From the sequence record PQ464590.1: 64,000 nt of DNA. One strand, written 5' to 3'. Made by a program: the position numbers and the translations under genes. Below the pieces are notes generated by a model. That model was not told where the DNA came from. It saw nothing but the letters and a program-made list of their open reading frames with translations, and made no database searches. Shown one piece after another: positions 1 through 64,000 of this stretch (positions are counted from its first letter, which is position 1; every line of letters begins with the position of its first letter).

Positions 1-152
1 AGCATTACCCGCCTTTACTAAGCAAAAAAATTTTGCATAGGGATCAAATAAAAATTTTAGAAAAGTCAAGGTATCCCTTACTCAACTAATAATTGAATGG
101 GATATAATTTGACTCGTCTAAAATTTCAGTACTGAACAATTTCAATCATTCA

Positions 153-365
153 TTATTCATCACGCAGATGAATGGTCACGCCGCTGCCGCCATAGTCCAG
201 GTGTACAGTGCCGCCTACCCGTGCCGCTGCCAGCTTGTTGCGTAGTGTACGCTGTGCCTTGTCGCTTAGGGCTAGCTGTCCTAACACGATACGCTGTACC
301 TCTTCAGTACTGTCAGTACGTCCTACAACGCTCCCTAACACGCCCTCGATAATGTATACTGTCAT
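153..365 (-). CDS. hypothetical protein
   Basis: ORF track 153..392; start moved to the ATG at 365, which follows a GAGG RBS. Confidence 0.6.
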   Translation of the reverse strand: MTVYIIEGVLGSVVGRTDSTEEVQRIVLGQLALSDKAQRTLRNKLAAARVGGTVHLDYGGSGVTIHLRDE

Positions 366-431
366 AGTACTATCCTCATATGATAAAGCCACCAGCAGTG
401 TGCTAGTGGCCTTGTAGTTAATGCTTACAGC

Positions 432-830
432 TTAGAACCCAAAGGCTTTAGCTGCTGCGTTACGCAGAGCAATCTCGTTGAGTACTTTACCCAACTGTTC
501 AGGGTTGATAATGTATTGTTCCATAGCCTCACGTACTGTACCACTAAAGGAACCAAAACCAGTACGGATGATGGTGATCTGGTCCAGACCAGTGATGTGC
601 ATACCTGCAACCTTCTCGGTCACGAACACAGCATCAATGCTGTATTCATTGTTGCCGTCATTGAAGTTCTCAATGCTGACAGTCTGGTTAGCTGCCCATG
701 CCATACACTCGCAGATAGTGCGGGTCGCTCCGGTTGATACGGTGCGGTTGTCCATCGCGTATCGAAGAGCATCAACACCAAAGGTGTTAGCAACGGCAAC
801 AACATCAGAGAAATGATTTAATGTGAACAT
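432..830 (-). CDS. hypothetical early protein
   Basis: AGGAG RBS before ATG 830; promoter TTGCAA-N16-TATAAT at 885-912. Confidence 0.75.
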   Translation of the reverse strand: MFTLNHFSDVVAVANTFGVDALRYAMDNRTVSTGATRTICECMAWAANQTVSIENFNDGNNEYSIDAVFVTEKVAGMHITGLDQITIIRTGFGSFSGTVREAMEQYIINPEQLGKVLNEIALRNAAAKAFGF

Positions 831-924
831 GGTGTATCTCCTGGTAATCTGAGGGAGAACCATTTCCCCCTCTCGATGTAAACAATTATACAGTACTAAA
901 CATTCATTGCAAGTGTTTTTTCAA

Positions 925-1008
925 AGTATTTTTTACTGTTCATTTGTACAGTACTAATCCACCAGCTACACTTCCGCACCCTGTGGGCTTGAGCATTGTT
1001 CTTGCTAT
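925..1008 (-). ncRNA. CCCACAGGGTGC element copy 1
   Basis: Core 976-987; H1 AGC/GCT; promoter TTGACA-17-TATTAT at 1015-1043; ends approximate. Confidence 0.55.
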
Positions 1009-2449: not shown

Positions 2450-2508
2450 TTCTTGATCAATATATTTTAGATACATTTGTGCACCCTGTGGGTTAGCTTG
2501 TTTCTATG
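2450..2508 (-). ncRNA. CCCACAGGGTGC element copy 2
   Basis: Core 2481-2492; H1 TAG/CTA; promoter 2515-2543; ends approximate. Confidence 0.5.
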
Positions 2509-2554
2509 GGATCTATAATAGCAAAGGGGCTAACCGAAGTCAACCCCTTGTATA

Positions 2555-2983: not shown

Positions 2984-3068
2984 CTTTTGAACCTCTTAAT
3001 CATCGTTTAATAGATAATAGCAAAGGGGCTAACCGAAGTCAACCCCTTGTATAAACTTTTCAGTACTG

Positions 3069-3659: not shown

Positions 3660-4029
3660 TTGTTTAGTTCCTTTGCTTAAGTGATGAAAAGAGTATACAG
3701 TACTAATCAGTTTAATGCAATAGCCGAGAGTGCAGAAACTTCATTATAATGTACTTTATTGTTAACAGTACTGTAAACGCGTGCTTTACCATTCTCAATG
3801 ATAACCTTTGCAGTATGATCCTTTGAAACCATGATGATAGTTTCTTCAGTACTGAATCGAGATACAACAAAACCCAATGAAACAATTTCATTTAGAGTTT
3901 TAGCAGAGGACGCCTGGATCAGTGTGTTAGTAGTAGATGGCATTTCGTTATTCCTTAATATTGTGTACTTCGTTTCGATGGGTACATAATACTAAAAGGG
4001 TTGAACCACGTCAACCCTTTATTTTCTCT

Positions 4030-5544: not shown

Positions 5545-5633
5545 TTTGCAATTCCTTATTAAGTTGGGCTGTCGCACTATTGCCGCCCTATGAAACTAAT
5601 TATACAGTACTGTACTGTAAACGCAAGTACTTT

Positions 5634-6426: not shown

Positions 6427-6519
6427 TTGGTAGTTCCTCTGTTTAGTTAATGTGTCGTCTTGATGAAAGTAATTATGCCAGTACTATCAAACGTTGTCAA
6501 TAGTACTGAGTAATTATTT

Positions 6520-6627
6520 TTAACCGATGTTCAAACACATTACAATTGCCAGTACTGCCACTGCTGCTACCTGGATTCGATTGATCTTGATAGCTTTGAT
6601 TTCGCTGTTTCGAATTGCTTGTTTCAT
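6520..6627 (-). CDS. 35-aa membrane peptide (below ORF-track cutoff)
   Basis: MKQAIRNSEIKAIKINRIQVAAVAVLAIVMCLNIG; GGAG RBS; its stop codon is the start of the next promoter cassette. Confidence 0.55.
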   Translation of the reverse strand: MKQAIRNSEIKAIKINRIQVAAVAVLAIVMCLNIG

Positions 6628-6714
6628 TTTTGTTTACTCCGTTGTGTTGTCTTGATGTAATACAGTATACAGTACTGAATGATGAATGCAAGTACTTTCT
6701 GAAAATAATTTCTC

Positions 6715-6790
6715 TTTTCTTCTGTACTTCTATCCCTTAAACTCAGGACGGATTTGTGCACCCTTGAGGGTTAGACCATTTCACTGGATT
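6715..6790 (-). ncRNA. CCCACAGGGTGC element copy 4 (loop variant CCC-TCAA-GGG)
   Basis: Core 6758-6770; H1 CCA/TGG; promoter TTGACA..CATAAT at ~6797-6828; ends approximate. Confidence 0.5.
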
Positions 6791-8324: not shown

Positions 8325-8346
8325 GCTGGTGGGTTAAACCACCAGC
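8325..8346. terminator. intrinsic terminator whose stem is an inverted Chi pair
   Basis: GCTGGTGG-GTTAAA-CCACCAGC, followed by TTTTT on the minus strand, directly after the stop of ORF 8353..8712. Confidence 0.75.
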
Positions 8347-8948: not shown

Positions 8949-10216
8949 ATGTAATACATCTTACTCTTCGTCGTCGCCGTTGTCAAGCGAAACATCAAAC
9001 AAATTTAAAATTTCGTGTCTGTGCTGGAGTAGAAATTCTGTGATCGCGATGTTATCATAAGGCGATAAGCCAGTGTTAGGACGTTCAGCACGGACAGTAC
9101 TGATCATTTTACCAACGAGATTATTAATCTCTTCCTCGTTCGCTTCAATGGCTTTCTTTGCTGAATCGTACAGCTTGCCTTTGTATTCGAATTTGGTAAC
9201 AGGTCGAATCTTTGCCATTTCTTTTTCCTCTTAAGGGTTAGGGTACTTCAGTACTGGAATACTGTTTCCCCTGGGGTGTGGCTGGTTACTTGACTTGATT
9301 GATTATACAGTACTGGCTAATGATGTCAATACCTTTTACATGAAATCGATCAGACCCATGTTAGATGCAATTTCGACGGCCTGGACTTTATCAGCGTCAA
9401 CTGGTACAAGATGTTTAAACGTCAACGCCAGATCACCGCAGAAGTAATAGAACGTGTTTTCGTTATAGGTGCAACGTTCGCCAGCGTCCTCAACCTCATC
9501 GCTATGGAAGAAAGGCATCCCTTCGTTGAAAACATATGCAACCGCGAGATCGATGTTATCCGCACGTACCAGGCGTTTAACAGTTTCGGTGTACTCACCC
9601 TGGCGAGCTTCCATAGTACAAACAAACAGGTTCAGGCCAGTAGCTTCGGTCATGGTTACGTTAGACATAATTTAATTCCTTAATGGTTGGTTAGTGTCGT
9701 TTCAATAAAGTTATTATGCCAGTACTATCAATCTATGTCAATAGTACTGGAGTAAAACTTTATGCGGTTTTCTTCTCTATAGTTACGTAAGTACTAAGAC
9801 CCGCGTACCAGTCTTTAAAGCCACGGCATTTACGCCCCGCTTCCTGGATGCTAACATAGAATGTGCCTGGCTCGCGTTCTCCGTTGTCAACTTCGGCGGT
9901 GAGTTTGGTAATGGCTTCAGTCAGTGCTACCTGGCAAGCCGCAACGTTTTTGACATCGTTAAAGATAGTACCGCAGAAGTTAGGAGTACCGTTGTAACGC
10001 ACACGAACGAAACCATCGGATACTTCACAGTTACGGAAAGAGATTTTGAGATCCATGTTAATTCACCTTAATGTTTGAGAGTAGAACCATTTCCCCTCTC
10101 GATGTAAACAATTATACAGTAATGAAGATCTATTGCAAGCATTATTTTAAAATATTCAGTACTTTTATTTGAATCTTTTCGCTTGACATACAACGCCAGT
10201 ACTGTATAATTAGTAC

Positions 10217-10312: not shown

Positions 10313-10822
10313 AACCAGGATAGTCAGCGTTTATTGATTGCGTGCAAATGTGTTATCGGTTAAGATGTCCCAGGTCGCTTTCACGATACGATACATTTCA
10401 CCAGTACTCACACCGCGTACAGTACTCTCAATGCAACCGCCGTTTGCAGAATGCTTTTCTAGTACCATGTAACCATTTTCAGAATGAGACTGATAACGAT
10501 ACGGGGCATCACGGAAGAGTAAAGCACCGTTCAACTTGTCAACCATATCTGCTACATCTTTGCGAGTTTTACGTGACATCTTTTGTTTCCTTAATGTTGT
10601 TTGCTTCAGTAAGTTAATTATGCCAGTACTATCACCTATTGTCAATAGTACTGTGATAATTATTTTAACCGTTAAACCAGAAGTCGAATAATTCTTTTGG
10701 TGTAGCGTCGTAGTACTTTGCAGCCTCTTCAGCAGCAGCCTCTTCAGTGAAACCGTCACGTGTAATTAAGATATGCATAAAGTCACATCCTAACTCCAGG
10801 GCCGCAGTGTCGTTACCGTGGA

Positions 10823-11083: not shown

Positions 11084-11383
11084 AATTATTCCTCTACTAC
11101 AGACCAATACCCGCGATATTCAGTCTCATCATCATCGCAGATGTTTTCCATCACTTCATTAAATTCCCCTTCACGGAAATCATCACCAACCATTTCCAGG
11201 ATGTACGCAATTGCATTTTCACGCAAGCCGTCTACATGGTGCGGGAGAACTTCTTCACCGCTAACCTGTTTTACAGTGAGATTGATTTTGATATTCAGAT
11301 CCATTTGGTTTACCTTAATGTTGTTTCAATAAAGCCATTATGCCAGTACTATCAAACATTGTCAATAGTACTGGAGTAAAACT

Positions 11384-11767: not shown

Positions 11768-13124
11768 GATTCTTTCCTTAATAGTGTATGTCGTTTCAAT
11801 AAAGTAATTATGCCAGTACTATCAAACTATGTCAATAGTACTGAGTAATTATTTTAACGGTTGTAAATGTCATGAATCAAAATGTATGATTCACGTTTAA
11901 TGTGTGGATGGTAAGGCAAATAATGCTTATCCAGTACTGACATCAAATCCTGTTCGAGATCATTGATATCATCATAGAATGTTGGGGATACCAGGATATG
12001 CAATATATCAGTATCCACCAGCGTTGCATTGAGTTCCTGCACGTTCTCAATATCCGCATTACGCTTCCAATCTTGCATATTGGAAGTCAGCACGGTACGA
12101 ATGTCATTAGCGTTTAATAAAATATCCATTATTGATTCTCCTGTTTAAGTAAAGTAATTATGCCAGTACTATCAAACTATGTCAATAGTACTGTGATAAT
12201 TATTTTACCTTTTTATCCGTAGTAAAGTACATCGCGATCTGGCGGGTAGTCAGGCACGCCGCACGTAAAGCACGCTCAGTATAGGAGGCATGTTGGTTAA
12301 AGCGATGCATCCCCAGGCCGTTACCGATAGTAATGTTTTCAGTTGCTTTGTATTGTTTCTGATTCATTGCCGTACCCTCTTAAGTGTCGTTAAAGTAATT
12401 ATGCCAGTACTATCAAACTATGTCAATAGTACTGTGATAATTATTTTAATCCAGGATTAACAATTCAAACGTGTAAGTACTGTTTTGAACGCGGTACTCA
12501 TGACGGTTTCCCACTTCGCGGATCTTAATCAAACGCGTATGCGATACCAGGTTTAACGCCTCGCGTACATCCACCAGCGTTTTACAGTCACTGATATCTT
12601 TGTTGAAGTTATCAGAATCACAGACCAGTACTCGACGGGCATTTTTCAGAATCTTGTTAATCATTTTCTACTTCCTCTTAAGAGGGGAGGTTGTCTCCCC
12701 TATGCAAAACATTATACAGTACTGAGATTACTTTGCAAGTACTTTCTATTACTTTTCTGCGGAGTACTTGTAAAAGATATCAGTATTCAAAGCATCCAGT
12801 ACAAAGTTTTTAAAATCCATTTCCGCAAGGCTGTAACGCTCTGTGCAGAACTGTACTGGCGTATGCTTCCCGATTTGCTTCAGTACTTCCCAGGTGATAC
12901 CAGTCTCAGTCTCAGGCGTTTCACGGCGAATGATACAAGCGTAGTAAGAGATCAGTTTACCTTCCTGACCATAAGAGAACTCTTTAACTGTAGTAGATGT
13001 TTCTGTGTTTTCGAATAATTCCATTTTGTTACCCTCTTTAAGTTAGGCTTTGTTTGCCTGATGTAATACAGTATACAGTACTGAATAATTAATGCAAGTA
13101 CTTTCTCAAAATATTTTCTCTTTC

Positions 13125-13204
13125 TTTTTCCTGTACATATGTACAGTACTTTTATTTTACTTACTTCTCCGCACCCTGTGGGCTTGAGCATTGTTCTTGC
13201 TATG
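13125..13204 (-). ncRNA. CCCACAGGGTGC element copy 6
   Basis: Core 13171-13182; 5' part identical to copy 1; promoter ~13210-13240; ends approximate. Confidence 0.55.
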
Positions 13205-14044: not shown

Positions 14045-14764
14045 GATTGTTTCCTTAATGTTGTTTCGTTTCGATAAAGTACATTCTACAGTACTATCAC
14101 ACAAAGTCAATAGTACTGGATGAATATATTTTACCAGCCCGCATTACAACGACGTGACGCGTACACTTCGCCCTGACGAATTACCATGCGGTGAGATCCT
14201 ACCACCTGTGCCACACGGGTTTTAAAATCGTGCTCAGTACTAAAATCTTTTGAATCCACTTCGTCGATGGTTTCAACTTTACCCGCGAATTTCACATTGA
14301 TATAACGTTTCATATTTTGTTTCCTTAAGTGTTGTTTCAATAAAGTACATTCTACAGTACTATCACAGAAAGTCAATAGTACTGGATGAATATATTTTAT
14401 TTGTGTTCTAACATGTAATGATAAGTAATGTATTTTGATTCATCACCAATCAAATCAATATACGCCTGGAGCGTCAAACGATCTGGAAGCGGGGGAAGTT
14501 CTAAACATTCCTGTACTGTAACCATTTCGTCAAACGTGTACTTAACACGCCCCGCACGATTCCATTGATTCAGTAATTCCGCAGGGTGTAAACCAGGGAT
14601 CATGATGCATACAGAATCAATTCGAACGTTATCACCGTTCACAGATACAAACTCAGAGTGATACTTAAAAGCTTTAGTGAATGCATGTTTCATTTTTATT
14701 TCCTCGCTTTGTTTCGATATAGAGAAGTATACAGTACTGAATAATATTTGCAAGCATTATTTTA

Positions 14765-14848: not shown

Positions 14849-15835
14849 GATAGTACTATAGCAAAAAAACTGGGAGGCTGTCAACCCCCCATTTGTAAAT
14901 TATTTGCTTTCCAGGTAAACGCCGTATTCGTTCGTTTCACCTTCCCACACGCGGTTGATCGTGTACGCGTCCGAATAGATGTTAATCTCATTCGTGGTAT
15001 AGTCTACCGCTATTTCGTTAATGTCGAAAGATCCGTGGGAAGTGGTTACAGTACTGGCATTAGGGAAGATTGTAACGTTCTCCACCTTACTAAGTGCACG
15101 CCCAAATTCATCACGGATAACGATAGTCATGCTCATTGTTCTTTCCTCTTAAGTGGGGGAAGATGTTTCCCCCTTGAGTACTAATATACAGTACTGGAAA
15201 ACTATTGCAAGTACTTTGTGCAATTATTTTTTAGTACTATCGCCACGCCGCCCCTGTGCCATAGCCTGTGCCTGTTCTACACTAAAACGCTCATACAGGC
15301 TTTTCTCTTCAGGGGTTAGTGTGGCGGCTTCCCGCATCATACGCCCCGCACGATCCCAGCTACGCGGCGTAGGGATACCCTGGATATCTTCGGGGGCAAT
15401 GTCGGGCACGCCTGGAACGTCTACAAACTCGATCCCCAGCTTTTCGGCTTGTTCACGGAATACACTAGATAATAGTTTCATCTTTAAAGCTCCTGTATCG
15501 CTCTGTGAGCGGTTTTAATGGTTAATCAGTACCGTACAACGCTTTAACGTCAAAAGCCCCGCTAATCGGCTTACAGGGCTTATCAATGCGATAGTGCACG
15601 CCACGATCCGATACGAAATAACCCTCAATATCTAAGTACATGAAAAACTCTTTCAGCACTCCACCGATTACACAAACCATCCACCCACTAGCACGCTTTT
15701 TGTGTAGACCATCGTTAACGAGAATCTTTCTCATTACGGTGCCAGGTGTTGTGATTTCGCTTAAGTTTCGCATTTCGATCTCCTGAATGATATTAGGATA
15801 GTACTGTACACGTATACAGTACTATCATTAACCAC

Positions 15836-17524: not shown

Positions 17525-18315
17525 ATTGTTTTTATACTCGTTTTAATGCCAGGGCAAAATCCCCTACTTCGGCCACCGATCCCGTAAAGCGTTGCATATA
17601 ATCCACTACCGTGCTGTTTTCCATCGGGGCAATGATTAGATTATCCTGATCACGTGCGGCGATGTCAAAGAAAACAACCTGCGGATCATAGTTACCGACT
17701 TTCGCTGCGGCTTCAGCCATATCCGCACAAATACGCTGTAAGTCACTTAAACGCATAACAGTACTCATGATACTTCTCCTTAATAATGGGGGAAGTTGTT
17801 TCCCCCTATGCAAAACATTATACAGTACTGAATGAGTTATGCAAGTACTTTTTTTACAAGCAAGGGGCGTAAACTTTACCAGTGTTTACCCAGACGTTGA
17901 ATTTCGGCATCTTATCCCATTCATCCATCGTTAACCCCAGGGCGTGCAGGTAGTCAGTACTGAATACGCCGCCACGTGGTTCAATGCGATAATCTTTATG
18001 TACTGCGTAAAGCTTCCCTTTGTACTCATACGCCAGGGTTAAATCACTGGTATTCATCGCATGAATCAAAGTGTCTAACATCGCGTGCATTGCGAATTGT
18101 TCACGCTTAAGAGGCTGTGAACGTGCGACGGCACGCCAGGCTGCAATAGTACTGTTAACAGTTTCACGGGACTGATTATTCATATCAGCACGGAAGTTAA
18201 TCAGGTCATTCATTGCGTTAATCATAGACATAATATTTTCTCTCTTAAGTTAGTAGGGGAAGTTGTTTCCCCTATGCAAAACATTATACAGTACTGAATG
18301 AGTTATGCAAGTACT

Positions 18316-19187: not shown

Positions 19188-19324
19188 GTTGTTTCCTTAA
19201 TAGTGTTGTTTTGCTTCAGTCCCTATATAGTACAGTACTGACAAAAGAATGCAAGTACTATTTTCATAAAAAAGATTTTGCATTTAGGTATTGACTCCAC
19301 CCACAGAACCTGTATAATTAGTAC

Positions 19325-19940: not shown

Positions 19941-19996
19941 CTTTTAACGGACGGACTCCCGCACCCTGTGGGCTTGTCCTGTTACGCCAGGATTGA
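19920..19996 (-). ncRNA. CCCACAGGGTGC element copy 12 (convergent with copy 11)
   Basis: Core 19961-19972; H1 TCCTG/CAGGA; promoter TTGCAA-17-TATAAT at 20002-20030. Confidence 0.6.
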
Positions 19997-21198
19997 AACT
20001 AATTATACAGTACTGAATTATTTTTTGCAAGTACTAAAAATAGTAGTAGACAATTCATTTCTATGTGATAAGATGATTCCAGATTTAAAACAATTCGATT
20101 CCAGATACTGCCAGGGAAAAAACAACCCTGACGCGGTAGGCTAGCCGCACCCCGCGATCTAGCAAAGGTAAATGCGAATCATTCCTATTTGCAAATGAGA
20201 ATCAATCTCATATGCGAACGAGTATCATTTGCAAATGCAGATGATAACCATTCTCATCTGGCTCAAAATTCGAGTCGGCTTTAGCTCGCCCTAAAGAAAG
20301 CCACCAGCAACCCTTCGTGTATCCATAGTACTGCCATAGTACTGCCATAATTCTTCAATTAATCTCAGTACTGAATGCTTAGCCAAACAGTACTGTTTAT
20401 GTTTTCCGATGGAGGTCAGAAATCTTATTAAGTGGTGAATCCAATTCACTATTCACAGTACTATAGGGATAGGTGGTCCCATGTTAATAGTACTACTATA
20501 GTGAACTGCACTTACTTAAACAACATTCGGGCAGTCATGAAGTTCACCGTGTTCATGAAAGTAGACAGTCCCTAGGCTTAGCAGTACTGGAATGATGGAA
20601 GGCACACACTTCAGTACTGAAAGCTTTCTTTTACTCTTTGACGATGTACACCAGGATATAACGTAGGAGCTTAGCTGGTGTGCCTATCTCCCTCGTAGGA
20701 CGCTATTATCACATATACGCGTGTCCACGTCAAGCTTTATTTTCAATAATGCAGTACTGAATTTTTGGGCCAGGCATGATCGAGATTTAGGATGGAGCAC
20801 CTTCCAGATTTTTGCTGGAGGGTCATTGACTTTTTTAAATTTTCAACTTTTTGCTGGAGGGTCATCGGGAATTTCCCTGAAGCCTGGTTCCCTCCTTTCT
20901 CCCCACCTCATTGTACACCCCTCTTGTAGTACTGTCAAGAAATACTTCTTGTACTCTGACGTTACAAGAAGATATAGTTGCAGGGGTGGTACAGTACTGA
21001 ATAGTACTTAAGAATGCTTTGCCGTGTTTACCTGTACTTCTGTACATATGTAATTATACCCATACATATAAAAATGTACAGTACTGTACGTATATACAAA
21101 TGTGCCTTTTACGGGGTGTTGAATCCTTTCGATAACGTTTTGTCCAGGGGGAATTTACCCCCTGTGTAAGATTACGTTCTCTTTCAGGAACTAACACC

Positions 21199-23541: not shown

Positions 23542-24750
23542 ATGATACCTTTTGCAAGAATGATACAGTACGGGAATGTTGTACAAGAAAATAAGATAGT
23601 TAAGATTGATAATAATGTTGCTGCTGGGGTGTTGTTATTATCTAGTACTGGTGATTTATATGGTTTCGGTCCTAATGGTGCATATCAATTAGGGTTAGGA
23701 CATAACAATGCGGTGACTACACCGACATTATTATTCAGTGGTGTTAAGAATTTTTGGAGTGCTGGAGGTGATTCGGTACTACAGACTACGGATGATAAAT
23801 TTTATGCTGCTGGGGTTGGTAATATAATTGACGCGGCGAACACTTCCAGGCAGGTATGGACTGATATAACTTCTGTCTTTTCTGCTGTTGACATATCAGA
23901 TATTAAGAAAGTAGATATAAAGGCGAACTGTTTAGCAGTACTGACAAATTCGGGGAATTTATATTGTGCAGGATACAATGGTTATATGGCATATAATGGT
24001 ACTGCTACAGTTCGGTACGCGAACTTAACATTAGTTCGTTCTGATGTAATTGATATTAAGGGCAATTACAATTTAGGTTTATTTACATTAAGGACTAATG
24101 GTAAAATATATGGTGGGGGATATAATACATCTGCCCAGATGGGTTCAAACGGTGGTGATTCACAGAATCCTAATACAGTAGTATATTATTCTGGGATTAC
24201 AGGGTCAAGTGATTGGTCTTATGCAAATTTAGATTGTTTATACACATGTAGGACTGGTACATTTTTGAACAACGCAAAATTAGTAACTGGTTCTGATACC
24301 TCTCTAAAAATGCGTGTAAGTGGTACTGGTACTGATGGTTCCTTATCTGGGGTAACTGGTAAATGGTCGGGATTCCAGACTGCATGGGGTTCTGAAAACA
24401 TACTACAAGCTGAAAACATTTTAAAGGGATTTGATAGTAGTGCTAATACTACATCTCCATTTTTACTTACTAGTGATGGTATATGGACATGTGGTAATAA
24501 TGCATATGGTCAGCAGGGAACAGGTGACGTATCGAACAAATTAATTTATACTAGAAATAGTAAAATAGATAGTATTGTTAAAGATTATAGTAAATTAACT
24601 ATTTTTAATGCAGCATTTTATACTTCGTACTTCGTATATGATAATAAATTATACGGGACTGGTGCGTTAGGTTTTGCCAATGCTGGATCGTTAATACCTG
24701 GTCACAGTACTGGGTCTAGTGTATATGTAGAAATACCACTACCATTTTAA
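23542..24750 (+). CDS. RCC1/BLIP-II-like beta-propeller with MIPF tag
   Basis: G.LY..G.N..GQLG.G repeats. Confidence 0.8.
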   Translation: MIPFARMIQYGNVVQENKIVKIDNNVAAGVLLLSSTGDLYGFGPNGAYQLGLGHNNAVTTPTLLFSGVKNFWSAGGDSVLQTTDDKFYAAGVGNIIDAANTSRQVWTDITSVFSAVDISDIKKVDIKANCLAVLTNSGNLYCAGYNGYMAYNGTATVRYANLTLVRSDVIDIKGNYNLGLFTLRTNGKIYGGGYNTSAQMGSNGGDSQNPNTVVYYSGITGSSDWSYANLDCLYTCRTGTFLNNAKLVTGSDTSLKMRVSGTGTDGSLSGVTGKWSGFQTAWGSENILQAENILKGFDSSANTTSPFLLTSDGIWTCGNNAYGQQGTGDVSNKLIYTRNSKIDSIVKDYSKLTIFNAAFYTSYFVYDNKLYGTGALGFANAGSLIPGHSTGSSVYVEIPLPF

Positions 24751-24762
24751 GGAGAGAGAGAA

Positions 24763-25890
24763 ATGATACCGTTTGCAAGGATGATACAATACGGGAATGT
24801 TGTTACCCCAATAGAAGAATATGACAGAAGTATGCAATCTCAATATAATGCGGTATATTATTTGCATCGTAATGGGGATTTATATTCGTACGGGAATAAT
24901 AACTTAGGTCAATTGGGCGTTGGTGATGCTGCGAACCGAACTGTATGGACAAAAGTACTGCAAGATGTTAAAAAGTACTGGTTAGGTGTTCATGGATGTT
25001 TAGCAGTAAAGACCGATGGTTCATTGTGGTACACTGGTAGTGCTACTGCGTTTCCACAGTTAGGTTCAACAACATATGTGTTTATTAATGTGGACTCATA
25101 TTTTTCTGGTGTTGGAATTGATAGTGCCATGATTCGAGATGTTATGATAACAGATAGTATTAAGGTTATAACAACTGATGGAAGATTTTTATATTGTGGT
25201 TCAAACGGGTCTAGACAACTAGGTACTGGTTTAACAGCTAACGTTCCAACATTAACATTTGATCCTAATTTTACAAATATAGTATCTATGGGTGGAGCAT
25301 TTGATAACACAGTACTGATATTATCTAATGGTGAAGCATGGCAAGCGGGTGCTTATCGTAATAATACAGGCGGGAGCACGAACCGAAATCCATTTGCTAA
25401 AGTTCTTGATGGTGTAAAATATTGCGGTTCTGCATTTCAAAGTACATATTATTTCATGTTAGATGGGACAATCAAAGTTACTGGATATAATAGTTATGGT
25501 CAATTGAGTACTGGTAATACTACAAATACACCAGAGGGTTCAATGGTACAAATATCACATACGTACGATCCAAATTCGGATATTAAAATTTATACATCTT
25601 TATCTAACAATGCTGGAACATCACCAGTACTGTATCATAATGGATTATTATGGAGATGTGGGAGTAACTCAACAGGACAGGTAGGTATTGGTTCAGTTGT
25701 ATCACCACAAACACTGTTAGTTAATCCTTTAATGACAAACGTTCCTAGTGTTAAATATTTCAGTGCTGATAATATAAGATTCTTTGTTATTGATAATGAA
25801 TATAAATTATATACATGTGGGTCGGTGTCATTAAATGGTGTTCCTAATTTGGATACATTAACATACGCTGGCGTACAGCCGTGGAATTAA
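24763..25890 (+). CDS. RCC1/BLIP-II-like beta-propeller with MIPF tag
   Basis: GDLYSYGNNNLGQLGVG and related repeats. Confidence 0.8.
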   Translation: MIPFARMIQYGNVVTPIEEYDRSMQSQYNAVYYLHRNGDLYSYGNNNLGQLGVGDAANRTVWTKVLQDVKKYWLGVHGCLAVKTDGSLWYTGSATAFPQLGSTTYVFINVDSYFSGVGIDSAMIRDVMITDSIKVITTDGRFLYCGSNGSRQLGTGLTANVPTLTFDPNFTNIVSMGGAFDNTVLILSNGEAWQAGAYRNNTGGSTNRNPFAKVLDGVKYCGSAFQSTYYFMLDGTIKVTGYNSYGQLSTGNTTNTPEGSMVQISHTYDPNSDIKIYTSLSNNAGTSPVLYHNGLLWRCGSNSTGQVGIGSVVSPQTLLVNPLMTNVPSVKYFSADNIRFFVIDNEYKLYTCGSVSLNGVPNLDTLTYAGVQPWN

Positions 25891-25900
25891 GGAGAGAGAT

Positions 25901-27040
25901 ATGTTACCATTCGCAAGAATGATACAGTACGGAAATGTTGTACAGGTAAAGGATATAGTTGATATACAAGTATCCAGAACTCACGCATTAGTACTGGATA
26001 GTGATGGAAACTTATGGGGTCGTGGAACTAACACGAACAACATATTAAACCACACTGGAATGAGTAATACTAGTACTTTTGTATTAGTTGATACTGGAGT
26101 GACTGCAATGTTTTGTGGTTATATCCTTACCCTGTATGTAAAGAACGGGGTATTATATAGAATTGGTTCATCAATGACATGGGACACCGGAGCGGTTCTA
26201 GTACCGACTGCGGTTTCTATTCCATTTTCTGCTGCATCCATTAAGAAGATTCAATGCGTTACCAGTACTAGTATAATGATACTATTGAATGATGGTACTA
26301 TGTGGTACAAAGGTGCAGGTACTAACGGTAGATTTGGTAATGGCAGTACTGCATCTGTTAGTACATGGACATTAAGTACTGTTACTGATATAAAAGACAT
26401 ATATCATTGTGTATGCTTTTTAGAAGGTAGTACAGCGTTTAGTATCTTATTGAAGAATGATGGTACTGTATGGGGAGCAGGTAGTGTAGCACTGAATACT
26501 ACGTCTAATACATTTAGATTCAATTCATACTTAAGCACTGCAACGTGGTTCCAGCGTACAATACAGAGTGATATAGTTCAGATTGCGGCTGGATCAGGTA
26601 GTAGTGTTTTATTCCTGGACAGTACTGGTGTATTGCGTGGAGATGGAAATACCAATGGTGAATTAAGTGGGAATACCACGTCTGGTACGTACAATAATAC
26701 ATTAATGGCTAACGGTGTGAAGTTATTTGGTCTGAACTGGGAAAGTTCATATTATGTACAGACTGCTACGCCTACGGTATTAAATGCTGGTGGACGAAAT
26801 TATAATTTATCGTCCTCATTCACTTCACCTGGTTCGTATGTAGGTAGAGTCAGTACTGATTTATCAGAGGAGATTAAGGCAATATATACAACCAGGGGTG
26901 TTGATATTGGTTTTGGTATTACTTATATTTCATTACAGGGTAATAACGTAGTAATGGGTGGTAACAGTACTGCTTATCAGTTAGGTGTGAATACTGGGAA
27001 TATCAATTTAGTTCAAAGTAACTTACCTGGTGTAAGTTAA
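25901..27040 (+). CDS. RCC1/BLIP-II-like beta-propeller with MLPF tag
   Basis: HALVLDSDGNLWGRGTN repeats. Confidence 0.8.
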   Translation: MLPFARMIQYGNVVQVKDIVDIQVSRTHALVLDSDGNLWGRGTNTNNILNHTGMSNTSTFVLVDTGVTAMFCGYILTLYVKNGVLYRIGSSMTWDTGAVLVPTAVSIPFSAASIKKIQCVTSTSIMILLNDGTMWYKGAGTNGRFGNGSTASVSTWTLSTVTDIKDIYHCVCFLEGSTAFSILLKNDGTVWGAGSVALNTTSNTFRFNSYLSTATWFQRTIQSDIVQIAAGSGSSVLFLDSTGVLRGDGNTNGELSGNTTSGTYNNTLMANGVKLFGLNWESSYYVQTATPTVLNAGGRNYNLSSSFTSPGSYVGRVSTDLSEEIKAIYTTRGVDIGFGITYISLQGNNVVMGGNSTAYQLGVNTGNINLVQSNLPGVS

Positions 27041-27044
27041 CAGG

Positions 27045-27077
27045 ATGCCTGGTACTTTTGGGTACTGGGCATTTTTA
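27045..27077 (+). terminator. intrinsic terminator
   Basis: ATGCCTGGTAC/GTACTGGGCAT 11-bp stem plus TTTTT; near copy at 31782-31814. Confidence 0.75.
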
Positions 27078-27110
27078 ATTAAATACTGTATATTAAATGA
27101 GGGGATTTAT

Positions 27111-28304: not shown

Positions 28305-28316
28305 GAGAATAAAAAA

Positions 28317-29468: not shown

Positions 29469-29483
29469 GGAGATTAAAAAAAA

Positions 29484-30620: not shown

Positions 30621-30629
30621 GGAGGGATT

Positions 30630-31775: not shown

Positions 31776-31848
31776 GTATATATGCCTAGTACTTCAACAG
31801 TACTGGGCATTTTTAATTAAATACGTTATATTATAAATGGAGGTACAG

Positions 31849-38247: not shown

Positions 38248-39018
38248 TTATTTCTCCAGGAACATGTTTTCAGCCATATCTTCCCAATCGAACGGGAACT
38301 TATTGTACAAGCCAGCCATCAGTACTGGCATACGCAGAGAAGGTGAACGGAGAGATTCTTCGTTCTTCAGCATCCAGTTCAGGATCTGCTGTGAACCTTC
38401 TTTACTAACGAACTGGTTTTCCAGGATGTTAGTTTTCTTCATGATGTTCTCAATGTGAATCATCACTTCTTCATTGGTGAACAGTTGCAGGTCAATGAAG
38501 ATACTACGTGTAATCAGAGCATCGATATGTGGAGACAATGCTGTTTTACCTTTCGCAATCTGTGACAGATTCTTGTTCGTCAGGAAGATAACCTTCCCAC
38601 GGAATTCGAACTGCTTAGGAATGCCCTGCTGGTCCAGGTACTTGCTTGATGTACTGTATGATACTACACGTTTAGCGGACGTGTCCAGTACTGCTTTCAG
38701 CAAATCGATATTAGTTTCATCACTGAAGATATCAACATCATCCAGTAACAGTACTGAAGCAGCGTGACGGGACTTGTACAGAGCTTCGTACAGACCCATA
38801 GTAGTAACTTTACCAGAGATCTTCTTGTAGTCAATCTCGTACGCTTGGTCAGCTTCGGTTAGACGTTTGTCCACATTGTAAGTCTTGCCAACGCCGCCTT
38901 TACCAGAAACGATCAGGCTGTTAACGGAGTTAGCTTGAGTATCCAGAAGACATTCAAGAGCAGCGGACATGGACTTAAAGTTCTTTTCAATCTGTAATGC
39001 TTTTTCTTCGCGAGTCAT
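38248..39018 (-). CDS. AAA+ family P-loop ATPase
   Basis: Walker A GKGGVGKT, Walker B LLLDDVD, sensor-like FLTN; start reassigned to MTREEK. Confidence 0.85.
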   Translation of the reverse strand: MTREEKALQIEKNFKSMSAALECLLDTQANSVNSLIVSGKGGVGKTYNVDKRLTEADQAYEIDYKKISGKVTTMGLYEALYKSRHAASVLLLDDVDIFSDETNIDLLKAVLDTSAKRVVSYSTSSKYLDQQGIPKQFEFRGKVIFLTNKNLSQIAKGKTALSPHIDALITRSIFIDLQLFTNEEVMIHIENIMKKTNILENQFVSKEGSQQILNWMLKNEESLRSPSLRMPVLMAGLYNKFPFDWEDMAENMFLEK

Positions 39019-39023: not shown

Positions 39024-40139
39024 TCTCCTTCGTTTCGATGCATGTATAATAGCAAAAGGGCTGCCGATTGGCAACCCTTTTTGTCACTTCTTATCTAAAA
39101 TTTGTACTTCACCGTAGATCTGTACAATTTGTTTATCTTGGTGTTTAAGTACTAGAGCCAAGAAGGACTCTAACGCTTGAACATGGTCTTCAGAGTATTT
39201 TATACGAATAAAGTTATATCCGTTATTGATTGCGTACTCTGTTTTTATTTTATCACGACGAACCAAATCACTGAATGAATCATCTGGATTCCAGACTTTG
39301 TTAATTCTAAAATGTTGCTCGCCATCATACTCTAGAAGTATGTTTTTACTTTTCACATACCGGTCAAAGCGTAGCTTCTTTTTATCCTTACAACCATCAA
39401 ATGTAGCTTCTCTTTTAGATCTACCTAAAATAGTGTCTATGTCCTCAAATTTATAAGACTCCCCAGTTGCACACATAGGACAACCTGCACCCATCTTACC
39501 ATAATGAATTGATGCTTGCTGTAGGAATGAACCGTGAACTGGGCAAATGATTTCTACTTTATTAAATGCACCAGTATATACCGATTTCGAGTAATCATAG
39601 AAGTAATCATGTCTTTTATTTGACATTTCTATGAATTTGTTAGTGTCATACATCTGTGATTGACCACGTTTAATGGTTCCACACTTATTACAACCACGAC
39701 CACGTTGATGGTCATGTGCTATTTGTGTAAATTCACCATGAACCTTACATATTACTGTAATTTGGTTGAACACTCCAGTGTATTTGGTATTACTGTAGTC
39801 GTATGCATCACCATGCATAACACGACATTCCATGATGAATTCATCTTGTGTCTTGGTTTTTTTAAGTGATTTTACTTTATCACCACATTGAGGGCAGCGT
39901 TGACCGAAGCAATGATTAGCTGGAGTCTGTGTAAAATCACCATGTTCAGGGCAAGTTATAATAACTTTTTTGTGCGTGGTTGTATAAACTGATTTAGAAT
40001 AATCATAAAAGTCACCATGTGTAGCTCTTGCATTCTTAATGAACTGCTCCTGAGTAATACGAACACCCATTTTTTGTATATCTCCTTCGTTTCGATGCAT
40101 GTATAATAGCAAAAGGGCTGCCGATTGGCAACCCTTTTT
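39024..40139. mobile_element. endonuclease module flanked by 59-bp identical direct repeats
   Basis: 39024-39082 is identical to 40081-40139 (terminator, promoter and RBS). Confidence 0.7.
39084..40070 (-). CDS. homing-type endonuclease with four Zn-binding (DUF723-like) repeats and a C-terminal PD-(D/E)xK/Vsr-like domain
   Basis: YDYS...Y......V.I.CP.HG.F.Q....H..G..CP.C repeated four times; LRFD...NILLEYDGEQHF...D..K. Confidence 0.8.
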   Translation of the reverse strand: MGVRITQEQFIKNARATHGDFYDYSKSVYTTTHKKVIITCPEHGDFTQTPANHCFGQRCPQCGDKVKSLKKTKTQDEFIMECRVMHGDAYDYSNTKYTGVFNQITVICKVHGEFTQIAHDHQRGRGCNKCGTIKRGQSQMYDTNKFIEMSNKRHDYFYDYSKSVYTGAFNKVEIICPVHGSFLQQASIHYGKMGAGCPMCATGESYKFEDIDTILGRSKREATFDGCKDKKKLRFDRYVKSKNILLEYDGEQHFRINKVWNPDDSFSDLVRRDKIKTEYAINNGYNFIRIKYSEDHVQALESFLALVLKHQDKQIVQIYGEVQILDKK

Positions 40140-59894: not shown

Positions 59895-61077
59895 TATTTG
59901 TCCTCGTAGAACTTTTGAAGTTCATACATAGCCGCATTGTCTTTGTTGATGCGGTCATTGATTTTGGCTTGCTCAATGTAACCGATAGCCCAGTTATACA
60001 ATGCTTCTAGTACTACGTCACTTACGTACATGATACCTTTACCAGAAGTTGGATAAGCTACGCTTAGTACACCACCATGAGTATCGATATTGATAGATAT
60101 TGCACGATACACATTTGAAATAGTGTACACTGAATGATCACGACCACAATCTAATGATGCGTGAAAATCTTCAGGACGAGCCTTTAGTAATTCCAGAAAT
60201 GCTTCAGCAGCTTCGAATTGTCCCATGTTACTCTCCAGTGTTGAATGCAATAATTTCGTTGATAGCGTGCAGTACAGTAATGATGTCATATGACAGTACT
60301 GAACCGGATTGTTTGTGTTGTTCGAGATTGTAAGTACTCAACTTGAATGGTTTTTCCACTACTGCGTCATCTTTGGCATTATAGATAATAACAACACGGT
60401 CATTGTCACGATCCATTTTTATAACCCCACGTGAACTCGCGTATAAACTATAGCTAGGGATCTGGTCGTCATCAACAGTTTGTGCTGGTAAAAATAACAT
60501 AGTATCAGAATCAACACCGATGTGCAATGTGAATGGATTACTGATATGTTTTACCGTTTTACCTTCGAAGAAAGGAAGATTCAAGATGTCCTGTACTAAT
60601 TGCTCGTTCATTGTTTAACCCTCGTTTGTTTATGTTCGTACATAATACAAAAAGGGCTGACCGAAGTCAACCCTTATTTTTTATAGACCACCATTACCTA
60701 CGATAGTGTTCGAATAGAACCCATGACCGTAATAACCATTGTGTGCGTTATACAGGTGCAGGAACGATTCGTAACCATCATCAGTCACCATTCTGAAAAT
60801 CGCGATGCCGCCATCATCCAGTACGTCAACAACCACTTCAGCTACTGACGGATCGAATGTGTACTGCGTGAAATCCACCTCTAATTGGAACATAGGGGAT
60901 TCTTCAATTGCATTGAACTCTGCATCAGTCTTGACCATAACATCAGCCACGAACCATCCAGCAGACTCACAGCATGAAACACTTGTATCATAACCTACAA
61001 ATACATCGTTCTTGTCAATCCAGTTTACTTTATCACCAACTTGTTTGAATAGCATAGTACTCCTATATTCTTATATT

Positions 61078-62778
61078 TTATTTTCCATGAAGTTGATTGT
61101 ATAAATCAATAAATGCCTCTTCATGGTTAGTTAGATTACCACGATCATAGTCTTCTAGACCACTTTCGAAGGACAGCATATTGTGCTCAAGCTCTGAACC
61201 TTCATCTGGATCATATGCTTCAGCGTTATGAATCATTGAGTTTTGTGCTTTAAGGAACTTATAGTAGTTGTCCTTAAGCTGACTCATGTAATGGTTCAGT
61301 GTCTTGTTTATGGAAGCAGGTTTAACACCTTCTTTCTTCATTTCATCAGCAAAGTACTCAAGAAGTTCTTTTAGTTCTTTACCATGACCCTTGGACTTAC
61401 GAAGGATGTCAAGACCAGTTTCGAGATCAGGAGCATCGTATGCTTCTTTGTCACGCTCATAAGCATGTTTAGCACCAGGACTCATTTTGGATACATCAAA
61501 GCCAGTAGACTCTTCTGTACTTTCTGAACCAGAAGATTGTTGTACATCTTCACCATCTTTCAGAATACTAAAGAATGCATCAGCGATGTTAATGAAACGA
61601 GAGTCTTCACCTTCTTCTGAATTGAAATCATTTAGCTTATGCATCGCTAGATCGTACAATGGTTTTGTTTTTTCATTACGTGCAGTCATGTCCATATAAC
61701 TTTGTAACAACCGCAAATCCTTATTATTTTTTGCTAAGTCTGCATATGAATCATAACTGTCTATTGGTGCAGTACCATTAGTTGCAAATGCATTGTTTGT
61801 GATTTTACGAATCCAATCAATAGAACCTTCTTCTGGTTCAGCCTGTGCAGATTGAACTTCTTCTTCATCACTGAAATCTAGTTCATCAGGTACTTCTTCC
61901 TCTTCTTCACGGCCTTTAAGTTCAAAGCCATTCGCTGCTAAGTCATCAGCCGCACTTGCCATCGAACTACGAACTGCACGAACATCGTTAACATCGTCCA
62001 CGTTCTCAATAGCCATATCAATCATGAAGAGTGCCTTATCAGCTTCTTCAAACTGGTTCGCTTGGTCAATCATGGATTGGACAAACTTATCACCTAAGTA
62101 CTCATTAGTCTTACGGAACTCTTCTTCTGTCATGCTTGCAGTACGATCACGTGGCTCCGGTCTAGCTTCTGGTGCAGGTTCATCAACCACATCAAGTTCT
62201 AGATCGTCTTCTTTTCCTGGACCTTCGATAGCACCCATTACAGTACTGAAGACTTCAGTAGGTTCAGTACTACTATTACCTTCCATACTATCAAGTACAC
62301 GCTGTGCAGTATCTTTCATTTGTTCTTTAGGAACAGCTTGAAGTGCCTGAACGATACCCTGAATGAGATTAGGCTTCTGTGCGAAAATCTTCATTAAGCG
62401 GTCTGAAAGCTCCTTCACGGGGTTTTGTGCTTTAGGAGCAGCAGCAGGTTCAGCTTTAGGAGCAGGGGCTTCAGGAGCCTTTGGTGCAGCTTGAGCGGTA
62501 CGTGCAGCATCCATATCTGCTAGCTGTTGTTTCTGGGCTGGATTCAGTAAACCCAAAGAGTTGAAGTACTTCAACTTTTCATGTGGATTCATCTTAGATG
62601 TATCAGTGCCAGCAGATGCAACGGTGTTTGCTTTACCAGCAGCACCAGTACCCTGATTACGGGAACCACGGGAACCTTGACCAGCATCATGTGAGTTTTT
62701 GCGACGGTTTTCATCACTCCACTTAGCTGAGTGACCGGACAGCGTAGCACCGTTCTTGGACTTAAAATTTTCAGGCAT
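61078..62778 (-). CDS. large acidic protein, probably late/virion-associated
   Basis: 566 aa, Glu/Asp-rich with a PAA/PKA linker; TATAAATA at 62816-62823 upstream; GGAGG RBS. Confidence 0.65.
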   Translation of the reverse strand: MPENFKSKNGATLSGHSAKWSDENRRKNSHDAGQGSRGSRNQGTGAAGKANTVASAGTDTSKMNPHEKLKYFNSLGLLNPAQKQQLADMDAARTAQAAPKAPEAPAPKAEPAAAPKAQNPVKELSDRLMKIFAQKPNLIQGIVQALQAVPKEQMKDTAQRVLDSMEGNSSTEPTEVFSTVMGAIEGPGKEDDLELDVVDEPAPEARPEPRDRTASMTEEEFRKTNEYLGDKFVQSMIDQANQFEEADKALFMIDMAIENVDDVNDVRAVRSSMASAADDLAANGFELKGREEEEEVPDELDFSDEEEVQSAQAEPEEGSIDWIRKITNNAFATNGTAPIDSYDSYADLAKNNKDLRLLQSYMDMTARNEKTKPLYDLAMHKLNDFNSEEGEDSRFINIADAFFSILKDGEDVQQSSGSESTEESTGFDVSKMSPGAKHAYERDKEAYDAPDLETGLDILRKSKGHGKELKELLEYFADEMKKEGVKPASINKTLNHYMSQLKDNYYKFLKAQNSMIHNAEAYDPDEGSELEHNMLSFESGLEDYDRGNLTNHEEAFIDLYNQLHGK

Positions 62779-62862
62779 AACGCCTCCTATAATTAATTAC
62801 ATTAAACTATGTGATTATTTATAGCATATCAAAAAGGGCTGACCGAAGTCAACCCCTTGTAC

Positions 62863-63669
62863 TTATTTTCTTTTCGCAATAGCCACGATATCAGTATATG
62901 GTAAATTGAATTCACGGAAAATTTCCAGTGCTTCATCTTTATCACATGCCAGTACATCAACGTCGTGGTAATATGGACCATTCTCGAACTTCACATTGTA
63001 CAGTACCGCATCACGTTTCGGTTCTTTCTTTTCAGGAACAACTTCAGGTTCCATTACGTACTTCAGTACTGAACTTAGTTCGTGAATACGCTTCTCATTA
63101 CCAGGTTTAGTGGCAAGAGATTGAATCTCTGTTACTAAACGCAGAATGTCAACTTCACGGATGAAGTCAGTTTTTACTGGCTCTTGCAGTACTGGATTCA
63201 GAATATGATCTTCCATCTTTGGAAGTTCAGTACTTTGTTTATAGAACCGCAGGATTGCATCATAACCAACCAATACATAACCATGTGGAAGATGAAGCTT
63301 GTGTTTCTCTTTGAAATCACTATATTTCAGGTTTTCAAGAATTTTACCGACTTGTTGCATCGTAAGGTTCGGGTGAATATACGATCCAGACCGTGTACCT
63401 TCTTCAAATGTAAACACGTTGTTATTCATCTTAGTGCCTTTATTCTCGTAATACCCGTTGTTCCCGTAACTGAAGTTTTGGATTGCTGAATATCCCACCA
63501 AATATAAATTATCTGGACCGTGAAGTTCGTGTAAATGGTTATACGCACTTTTCTTCAAGGTTTTGAGAAGTTCACGTACATCAGCAAGTGTCAACTCGTA
63601 GTGATAAAAATTACCATAATCTTTATCATTTTTCATTTCAACGAATGTATAAGTTCCAGATGTTGCCAT
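62863..63669 (-). CDS. hypothetical protein with an internal tandem domain duplication
   Basis: Two ~60-aa units, each ending LVGY(S/D)AI; start reassigned to MATSG. Confidence 0.65.
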   Translation of the reverse strand: MATSGTYTFVEMKNDKDYGNFYHYELTLADVRELLKTLKKSAYNHLHELHGPDNLYLVGYSAIQNFSYGNNGYYENKGTKMNNNVFTFEEGTRSGSYIHPNLTMQQVGKILENLKYSDFKEKHKLHLPHGYVLVGYDAILRFYKQSTELPKMEDHILNPVLQEPVKTDFIREVDILRLVTEIQSLATKPGNEKRIHELSSVLKYVMEPEVVPEKKEPKRDAVLYNVKFENGPYYHDVDVLACDKDEALEIFREFNLPYTDIVAIAKRK

Positions 63670-64000
63670 ATTATTATCCGATTTTTGTTGTGGGCGGCGT
63701 GGTGGAATTGGCATTAGTGAACCTCCACACGATAAGACCAGTCATACATAATTCCATCATCGTCATCATCTTTTTCATGAAGACGTAGTGTACCCTTTTC
63801 TGCAAGAATGTCAAGCATTTCGTACGGTACTAACGAATTTCCGTCAGCGTCAAAGAACTTACCCAGCTTCAACAAACGATCTTGAAGTTCACGCGGGGTA
63901 CGATACACCATCACGTTGTATCCTTCATCTACTGAAGTAAACACTTTACCTTCAAACGGTTTCATAGGATCTTTCATTAGATAGTCTCCATGCTGTCAAT

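Follow-up and report, generated by a model that had tools for sequence, protein, structure and literature searches.

Phage genomes are the textbook avoiders of palindromes, and the question raised by the DNA analysed here is why one palindromic hexamer, AGTACT, is repeated in it hundreds of times. The analysed stretch, hereafter called the window, comprises nucleotides 1-64,000 of the genome of Erwinia phage Hallingskeid (PQ464590.1), with which it is identical in sequence. Hallingskeid, isolated on Erwinia aphidicola, is a myovirus with a genome of 366,158 bp and is placed among the 'group 2.2' or RaK2-like jumbo phages, distant relatives of T4 (PMC11780129). The window has a G+C content of 40% and 163 annotated genes, of which the minus strand encodes 141. 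Positions 1-22.6 kb form a block of very small early genes, and the rest contains, besides an array of RCC1-repeat genes, further small genes and the genes for PnuC and NMN adenylyltransferase.

Excess of AGTACT in the window and in the phage clade

AGTACT is the commonest hexamer of the window, with 327 sites. A preliminary description, made from the sequence alone, had noticed six sites in the first kb and a similar density throughout, in coding (Ser-Thr, Val-Leu and Gln-Tyr frames) and non-coding DNA, and had estimated an enrichment of order 10-fold or more over 0.3-0.4 sites per kb. These observations were borne out on counting. The six sites start at positions 128, 306, 366, 481, 892 and 950, every 2-kb bin of the window holds 3-10 AGTACT per kb, and the first-order Markov expectation is 22.4 sites (0.35 per kb), giving an observed-to-expected ratio (O/E) of 14.6. 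Dinucleotide-preserving shuffles of the window contained 22.0 +/- 4.7 copies with a maximum of 34 (z of about 65). The expectation is 129.5 for a Markov model of order 3 and 250.6 for one of order 4, which already includes the counts of AGTAC, GTACT and GTAC. When all 4096 hexamers were scored at order 4, a check that had been proposed from the outset, AGTACT ranked first with z = 11.2.

By the GenBank gene coordinates, 261 sites are coding (4.5 per kb) and 66 are intergenic or partly so (11.3 per kb), 80% of the copies thus being inside genes. The coding sites are divided among the three frames as 111, 39 and 111, which read Ser-Thr, xAG-TAC-Txx and Val-Leu, respectively. The density is 7.0 per kb in the early block (1-22.6 kb), 4.5 per kb in the RCC1-repeat array and 3.9 per kb in the remainder. 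No positional bias was detected within genes, along which the AGTACT sites are uniformly distributed.

An excess of this kind might be produced by codon usage, by GTAC bias or by repeated sequence: AGT, ACT, GTA, CTG and TAC are favoured codons, GTAC is enriched 2.6-fold, and about 36 copies come from repeated promoter cassettes. Against the 261 coding sites observed, however, synonymous shuffling within genes gave 72.9 +/- 6.7 sites, codon permutation 29.6 +/- 5.4 and resampling from the codon usage of the window 51.9, so that a 3.6- to 9-fold excess remains. The enrichment extends to each of the three frames, for which synonymous shuffling gave counts of 28, 16 and 28. The favoured codons largely result from AGTACT itself, since 111 of the 384 AGT codons sit in AGT-ACT. 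Over 350 kb of the genome the other NGTACN hexamers reach only 1.3-2.9 times expectation, and GGTACC is absent where 42 copies are expected. The preliminary description would have been refuted by a general GTAC or dinucleotide bias, for which neither these hexamers nor the dinucleotide shuffles give support. A composition or codon artefact is ruled out by the three codon-aware null models together with Markov orders 1-4, and a general GTAC bias by the other NGTACN hexamers, so that we assign this explanation a negligible probability. The data support the view that the AGTACT excess is a selected feature at the DNA level and not a by-product of composition.

The same genome avoids other palindromes. 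The window lacks 22 GC-rich 6-bp palindromes entirely, and 23-31 six-bp palindromes are missing from each of the 16-42 kb stretches of its relatives. AGTACT is therefore an exception in an otherwise extreme palindrome-avoiding genome, in keeping with the trend opposite to palindrome depletion that had been pointed out beforehand. Among the GC-rich palindromes, TCGCGA (12 copies) and ACGCGT (15 copies) escape the avoidance.

The whole Hallingskeid genome contains 1313 AGTACT sites (3.6 per kb), 65 of them in the last 16 kb. In the seven 50-kb blocks of positions 1-350 kb, O/E is greatest in the early region (15.6) and lowest in the structural module (6.2), whose proteins are under the strongest constraint. 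In stretches of about 40 kb sampled from EJP2, PBECO4, Munch, GAP32, Kaldavass and RaK2, O/E is 5.3-10.6 (10.6 in RaK2), by which AGTACT ranks first or second among the hexamers of each stretch. We also compared 25 IMG/VR loci containing TerL. All 15 loci with a TerL of at least 71% identity show an O/E of 5.3-10.9 and a rank of 1-5 among the 4096 hexamers, whereas all 10 loci with a TerL of 41-45% identity give 0.5-2.1. T4 carries 9 copies against 7 expected (O/E 1.3). In the 100-140 kb region of PA5oct, a related Pseudomonas jumbo phage, a single copy was found against 11.3 expected (O/E 0.09), a depletion of about 10-fold. The enrichment is thus a trait of the whole clade of enterobacterial jumbo phages of about 350 kb, including the RaK2, PBECO4, GAP32 and Hallingskeid lineages. 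For the host side, 80 chromosomal loci of Enterobacterales and neighbouring orders were examined (1.59 Mb), and E. coli K-12 was sampled too; the host-order loci contained 110 AGTACT (0.069 per kb, O/E 0.66), or about one per 15 kb. Per kb, phage DNA thus has 50-75 times as many copies of the word as host DNA, a contrast through which it could serve as a mark of self.

Except for AGTACT, the most over-represented hexamers in the core regions of the relatives are CAGCAG, GCAGCA, AGCAGC and CTGGTG (4-7 fold). CAGCAG is the EcoP15I site, and CTGGTG is a part of Chi. Chi itself (GCTGGTGG) occurs 54 times in 350 kb against about 4.6 expected, mostly inside genes. Eighteen copies lie in the window between 389 and 44139, all within the first 50 kb, and 11 of the 13 copies within 1-21 kb are on the minus strand. 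Chi enrichment was also observed in EJP2, GAP32 and Kaldavass, while the T4 and PA5oct samples contain no copy of Chi. At 8325-8346 of the window, an intergenic hairpin consists of GCTGGTGG, a 6-nt loop and CCACCAGC, that is, a stem of Chi and inverted Chi, and it scores as a terminator on both strands.

Symmetry, conservation and protein cost of the sites

The base preceding AGTACT is C in 53-60% of the sites and G in 2-7%, and the base following it is the mirror image. The rule holds in each reading frame, whichever codon position the flank occupies: C is found at -1 in 50-54% and G at +1 in 46-74%, and G at -1 and C at +1 are avoided. The same rule was observed in EJP2, in PBECO4 with Munch, in GAP32 with Kaldavass, and in RaK2. 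No information content was detected beyond +/-1. AGTACT can therefore be read as an 8-bp palindrome, H-AGTACT-D, with CAGTACTG as the preferred form. The preferred 8-mer accounts for 110 of the 327 window sites and for 389 sites over 350 kb, where 6.6 are expected. Of the extended forms that had been described as frequent, this one stood, whereas TAGTACTA, with 14 sites, is nothing special. The two-fold symmetry is independent of translation and of gene strand, and points to recognition of double-stranded DNA.

The symmetry of core and flanks sets the word apart from polar signals of the type of Chi or the KOPS sequences, which are asymmetric and strand-biased. Interspersed repeats of the REP/BIME or MITE type are likewise not indicated: apart from the roughly 36 copies in promoter cassettes, flank conservation is absent and most copies are genic. 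A likeness to LexA-box half-sites (ACAGTA/TACTGT) was dropped, as no information was left at -2 once the promoter cassettes were diluted genome-wide. The mean gap between sites is 280 bp with a coefficient of variation of 0.93, close to a Poisson distribution, and the largest gap is 2.2 kb. The test for spacing periodicity that had been suggested gave no helical or other period, the only peaks being those at 20 and 22 bp, which arise from promoters.

To determine conservation, 33 orthologous genes of the portal-to-RNR core region were aligned by codons in six phages; in the window itself, 34 of the 163 proteins have detectable relatives in the sampled parts of related phages. AGTACT positions are shared between Hallingskeid and EJP2 at 54-57%, against 26.8% for all hexamers, and between Hallingskeid and PBECO4 at 26-52%, against 16.5%. 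Where the amino acids are identical, 61-93% of AGTACT windows agree at all six nucleotides, compared with 33-48% of frame-matched controls, so that conservation is about 2-fold over both types of control. Of the 193 positions at which AGTACT was found, 104 are confined to one species and 8 are common to all six phages. This is the pattern expected for selection on site density with moderate constraint at the site level, under which individual sites turn over.

The proteins bear the trace of the word. The four most over-represented dipeptides of the window, Tyr-Cys (2.28), Ser-Thr (1.99), Gln-Tyr (1.96) and Val-Leu (1.68), are CAGTACTG translated in three frames. AGT-ACT spells 111 of the 168 Ser-Thr pairs, and GTA-CTN spells 146 of the 218 Val-Leu pairs. 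The dipeptide excess together with this codon spelling indicates that the DNA word shapes protein sequence, and not the reverse. Only 3 informative cases of Hallingskeid-specific gains through amino-acid change were found. AGT is the commonest Ser codon of the window (384 of 1273). ARAGORN predicts a tRNA-Ser with anticodon ACT, cognate to AGU, at 114573-114663 of the genome (minus strand), which may be a translational adaptation to AGTACT; no such tRNA stands in the examined part of the list published for CBB.

Conservation at synonymous positions would also be mimicked by a molecular drive, in which sequence-directed repair or gene conversion makes and restores AGTACT and the word itself needs no function. 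Very-short-patch (VSP) repair, which favours CCWGG in E. coli, is an example of such a process. A drive could act alike on coding DNA of any frame and on non-coding DNA, a C5 methyltransferase and several nucleases are among the phage proteins, and the half-site variants AGTACN and NGTACT are mildly enriched (1.9-2.8 times). Yet none of the nine classes of one-mismatch neighbours acts as a sink: their O/E is 1.26-2.8, except for AGGACT/AGTCCT (0.66). The transition neighbours AATACT/AGTATT (1.35) and AGCACT/AGTGCT (1.51) are not depleted, and a VSP-like mutational sink was therefore rejected. Moreover, known drives of the VSP type yield an enrichment far weaker than 10-60 fold, and the implied Ser-Thr, Val-Leu, Gln-Tyr and Tyr-Cys replacements would need to be passively tolerated. 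AGTACT methylation has not been reported (PMC11780129), which also counts against a drive. Taken together, we consider a drive unlikely.

Paired AGTACT copies in early promoters

The 20- and 22-bp pairs of AGTACT coincide with 18 minus-strand sigma-70 promoters, which lie amid the small early genes at 5.6-20 kb. They belong to two families of nine copies each. In family A, AGTACT is followed by 1 nt, TTGACA, a 17-nt spacer ending in AGTACTGG, and CATAAT; the second AGTACT, 22 bp from the first, provides the TG of an extended -10 element. In family B, AGTACTTGCR is followed by 10 nt and AGTACTGTATAAT, so that one AGTACT overlaps the -35 element and the second abuts the -10 element; a GC-rich stem-loop usually comes next in the leader. 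The promoters are as follows.

6472-6507, minus strand, family A promoter, two AGTACT with starts 22 bp apart
9713-9748, minus strand, family A promoter, two AGTACT 22 bp apart
10617-10652, minus strand, family A promoter, two AGTACT 22 bp apart
11337-11372, minus strand, family A promoter, two AGTACT 22 bp apart
11807-11842, minus strand, family A promoter, two AGTACT 22 bp apart
12157-12192, minus strand, family A promoter, two AGTACT 22 bp apart
12398-12433, minus strand, family A promoter, two AGTACT 22 bp apart
14083-14117, minus strand, family A variant with TTGACT/TAGAAT, two AGTACT 22 bp apart
14349-14383, minus strand, family A variant with TTGACT/TAGAAT, two AGTACT 22 bp apart
5599-5631, minus strand, family B promoter, AGTACT starts 20 bp apart
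6664-6696, minus strand, family B promoter, 20 bp apart, within the annotated small open reading frame (ORF) 6624-6761
12711-12743, minus strand, family B promoter, 20 bp apart
13070-13102, minus strand, family B promoter, 20 bp apart, overlapping the start of the plus-strand ORF 13092-13187
15183-15215, minus strand, family B promoter, 20 bp apart, with extra AGTACT at 15177 and 15233
17817-17849, minus strand, family B promoter, 20 bp apart
18283-18315, minus strand, family B promoter, 20 bp apart
19227-19259, minus strand, family B promoter, 20 bp apart
20002-20035, minus strand, family B promoter, 21 bp apart, within the plus-strand ORF 19968-20144

The short ORFs 6624-6761, 13092-13187 and 19968-20144, which contain or overlap family B promoters, may be over-annotations. 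Both families recur in the early region of EJP2 with the AGTACT copies in the same places, and EJP2 has in addition a third promoter type, in which two AGTACT 11 bp apart bracket the -35 element. T4-type phages reportedly carry promoter-early stem-loop (PeSL) cassettes, said to have been described by Arbiol, Comeau and Krisch in 2010. The Hallingskeid cassettes resemble them as repeated early sigma-70 promoters, often with a stem-loop, between small early genes (5-20 kb of the window). In contrast to PeSLs, which are not described with a genome-wide palindrome, each cassette has two AGTACT at fixed places.

A protein bound to the promoter copies would cover the -35 and -10 contacts of RNA polymerase, and the layout is thus operator-like. 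AGTACT might then be primarily the site of a repressor of the early-to-middle switch, the coding copies being secondary and serving as decoys, a buffering sink or weak roadblocks. In agreement with this model, the copies are fixed beside -35 and -10 in 18 promoters of two unrelated families, the spacing of 20 or 22 bp places them on the same face of the DNA, and the layout, together with the additional 11-bp type, is conserved in EJP2. The cassettes, however, contain only about 36 of the 327 window copies (about 11%), the other 290 or so lying outside any such promoter, and none was found between 100 and 350 kb of the genome. A role as operator does not by itself account for a proteome-distorting selection on about 1250 coding copies. 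AGTACT is absent from the examined portions of the 18 RpoD-like promoters published for the relative CBB, so that its use in promoters appears to be a lineage-specific addition to an older trait of the whole genome; the idea that the clade in general uses it in promoters was rejected on the same ground. An operator as the primary role of the word is quite unlikely.

Candidate readers of the word and its meaning

AGTACT might be a target of covalent modification, as palindromic hexamers are typical targets of methyltransferases. The cyanobacterial palindrome HIP1 embeds the methylated CGATCG, and Hallingskeid encodes two methyltransferases; methylation or hypermodification of AGTACT could thus mark phage DNA. 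However, the comparison of native and amplified Hallingskeid DNA by nanopore sequencing reported modification at GATC and CCWGG only (PMC11780129). The two enzymes, one of the Dam family (PF05869) and one of the C5 family, fit these two motifs, and with roughly 1300 sites AGTACT could hardly have given a signal that went unnoticed. A cognate methyltransferase is therefore not indicated, on the basis of the published motifs rather than of raw signal, and a modification target is very improbable.

AGTACT could alternatively be read by a DNA-processing enzyme. In one version it would be the extended site of the phage DnaG-type primase: CAGTACTG has the classical CTG initiation triplet on both strands and could therefore prime in either fork direction. 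In the other it would be a two-way, Chi-like attenuator of an exonuclease, either host RecBCD or the phage Mre11/Rad50-like gp46/47. The sites are dispersed evenly over the genome without orientation, about one per 280 bp, the preference at +1 (G > A = T >> C) gives CTG or CTA triplets, and the genome encodes a primase, a DnaB-like helicase and SbcCD-like proteins. The roughly 12-fold enrichment of true Chi indicates that the genome does use dispersed nuclease signals. On the other hand, the six central bases of AGTACT are essentially invariant and form a perfect palindrome, a property typical of a dimeric binder and needless for priming or for Chi-like signals. Known primases recognise trinucleotides. 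Furthermore, the sampled stretches of T4 (gp41 helicase, gp61 primase and gp46/47) and PA5oct show no enrichment, despite related replication and recombination genes. The chance that AGTACT is a processing signal appears small.

The reader may also be sought in the host, where AGTACT could recruit or titrate a nucleoid-associated or cell-cycle factor of Enterobacterales to the benefit of the phage. Only phages of Enterobacterales show the trait, the related PA5oct being depleted in the word, and the E. coli SlmA-binding sequence, GTGAGTACTCAC, has AGTACT at its core (PMC3020112). The specificity of SlmA was measured as GTRAGYRCTYAC (PMC3020112), with GT and then a purine before the core. No match to this site was found in 350 kb, and identity with the SlmA site was rejected. 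These flanks are not enriched around the phage copies, the required purine belongs to the disfavoured class, and even one correct half-flank was found in only 30 of the 1248 AGTACT sites of the 350 kb. T4, which grows on the same hosts, lacks the trait. We know of no other enterobacterial protein with AGTACT specificity. A host factor as the reader seems rather improbable.

The explanation that we favour, tentatively and with less than even confidence, is that AGTACT is a dispersed site for a homodimeric double-stranded DNA-binding protein, clade-specific and most probably phage-encoded. The enrichment, its two-fold symmetry, conservation, cost to proteins and clade distribution, the contrast with the host and the operator-like placement in promoters are directly observed, whereas the protein and its purpose are inferred. 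With one site per 280 bp of phage DNA against one per about 15 kb of host DNA, the protein would load densely and selectively on the phage genome and would thereby mark it as self. The mark might shield the genome from nucleases or defence systems, direct it into a pool for replication or packaging, or allow it to be packaged selectively, and it would be a sequence-encoded substitute for the hydroxymethylcytosine of the T-even phages. In the lineage of Hallingskeid and EJP2, where AGTACT is also built into the early promoters, the same protein bound beside -35 and -10 would occlude RNA polymerase, and the layout suggests a second use of the word as an operator for the shut-off of early transcription. 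The selected self-mark of the preliminary description is upheld as far as selection (shuffles, symmetric flanks, conservation and dipeptide distortion) and the contrast with host DNA are concerned; its version as a modification target finds no support. That description did not include the spread of the trait over a whole clade or the roughly 36 window copies in repeated early-promoter cassettes.

Several observations weigh against this proposal. The deposited annotations of the whole record include no helix-turn-helix or ribbon-helix-helix regulator. Some 30 proteins, chiefly products of the window, were scanned against Pfam and PHROGs, with matches only to a DksA-type zinc finger, HNH and homing nucleases, a weak P-loop and a PD-(D/E)XK nuclease; neither these nor PDB scans revealed a reader. 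The near-Poisson spacing without helical periodicity does not indicate a regular lattice, for which DNA compaction might call, sites with optimal flanks are no better conserved than other sites, and the examined portions of the RpoD-like promoters of CBB are free of AGTACT, as noted above. The reader could instead be a host protein or a DNA-processing enzyme, and a site-restoring repair process could mimic the synonymous-position conservation.

Some other gene products of this genome may be noted. The weak P-loop match, also ORC-like, was given by a 256-aa protein of phrog_1250, encoded at 38248-39018 of the window (minus strand). Its gene is the only part of the 20-40 kb region with 78-84% nucleotide identity to E. 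coli jumbo phages. This conservation may have come about by homing-associated gene conversion, because the gene of an HNH/homing-type endonuclease (39084-40100, minus strand) adjoins it. Eight tandem paralogs with RCC1 repeats ('regulator of chromosome condensation'), of 375-402 aa, are encoded at 23542-33003 (plus strand), and a similar array is present in EJP2; despite the name, a role in DNA compaction is unlikely, because these are beta-propeller repeat proteins. Near the right genome end, at about 345-358 kb, there is a long tandem array of hypothetical proteins of roughly 170-220 aa, apparently paralogs.

The nearest described phenomenon is HIP1 (GCGATCGC) of cyanobacteria. Both words are short perfect palindromes that occur about once per few hundred bp, in all reading frames and in non-coding DNA, independently of codon usage and, throughout the genome, many-fold above every Markov expectation. 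For HIP1, too, the literature describes more conservation between orthologs than expected and a distorted choice of codons and amino acids, and its function is, to our knowledge, still unexplained. HIP1 differs in that it is chromosomal (with some cyanophages) and GC-rich and embeds methylated CGATCG accompanied by orphan methyltransferases, whereas AGTACT is AT-rich, is carried by a clade of lytic jumbo phages with hosts poor in the word, and has no reported modification. With Chi, KOPS and the DUS/USS sequences, AGTACT has in common that density rather than exact position is selected and that the copies are spread through genes. Those signals are read by dedicated protein machines and distinguish or process own DNA, but they are asymmetric and biased in strand or orientation, unlike AGTACT with its symmetric flanks. 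The 3.6 sites per kb are several-fold to more than tenfold above the densities of Chi in E. coli or of DUS/USS. The proposed logic is that of the T-even hydroxymethylcytosine, read by Alc and endonucleases II and IV, in making phage DNA distinguishable from host DNA, which lets phage functions act selectively. The T-even mark is added chemically, whereas in the carriers of AGTACT, distant T4 relatives with cytosine unmodified apart from Dam/Dcm-type methylation, the mark would be encoded in the sequence itself.

No report linking AGTACT or ScaI to these phages was found in the literature searched, which included the RaK2, CBB, EJP2 and Hallingskeid genome papers and a comparative jumbo-phage review and did not cover the GAP32 genome paper (Virology 2014). 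The case is new in its carrier, a clade of lytic phages, in the lack of cognate methylation and in the strong contrast with the host. A clade that avoids more than 20 hexameric palindromes completely and yet has one at about 1300 copies demands an explanation, and the signal is unusually clean, with 10-60 fold enrichment, a sharp clade boundary, symmetric flanks and synonymous-site conservation. For practical purposes, AGTACT is a one-line diagnostic of this clade in metagenomes, its density implies an exceptional vulnerability to ScaI-type restriction, and any recoding or engineering of these phages must respect it.

The reader protein, if real, would show how jumbo phages that form no nucleus and have ordinary DNA distinguish or organise genomes of 350 kb, and it would be the first mechanistic handle on any highly iterated palindrome. 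It is possible, although we hold it somewhat doubtful, that a clade of giant phages wrote a self-identity tag into its own sequence, where a phage protein devoted to the tag would tell phage DNA from host DNA, so that the former can be selectively protected, compartmentalised or packaged. If true, the tag would be a sequence-encoded alternative to the base hypermodification of the T-even phages or the protein nucleus of the Chimalliviridae, and its upkeep would be paid for with distortions in hundreds of proteins.

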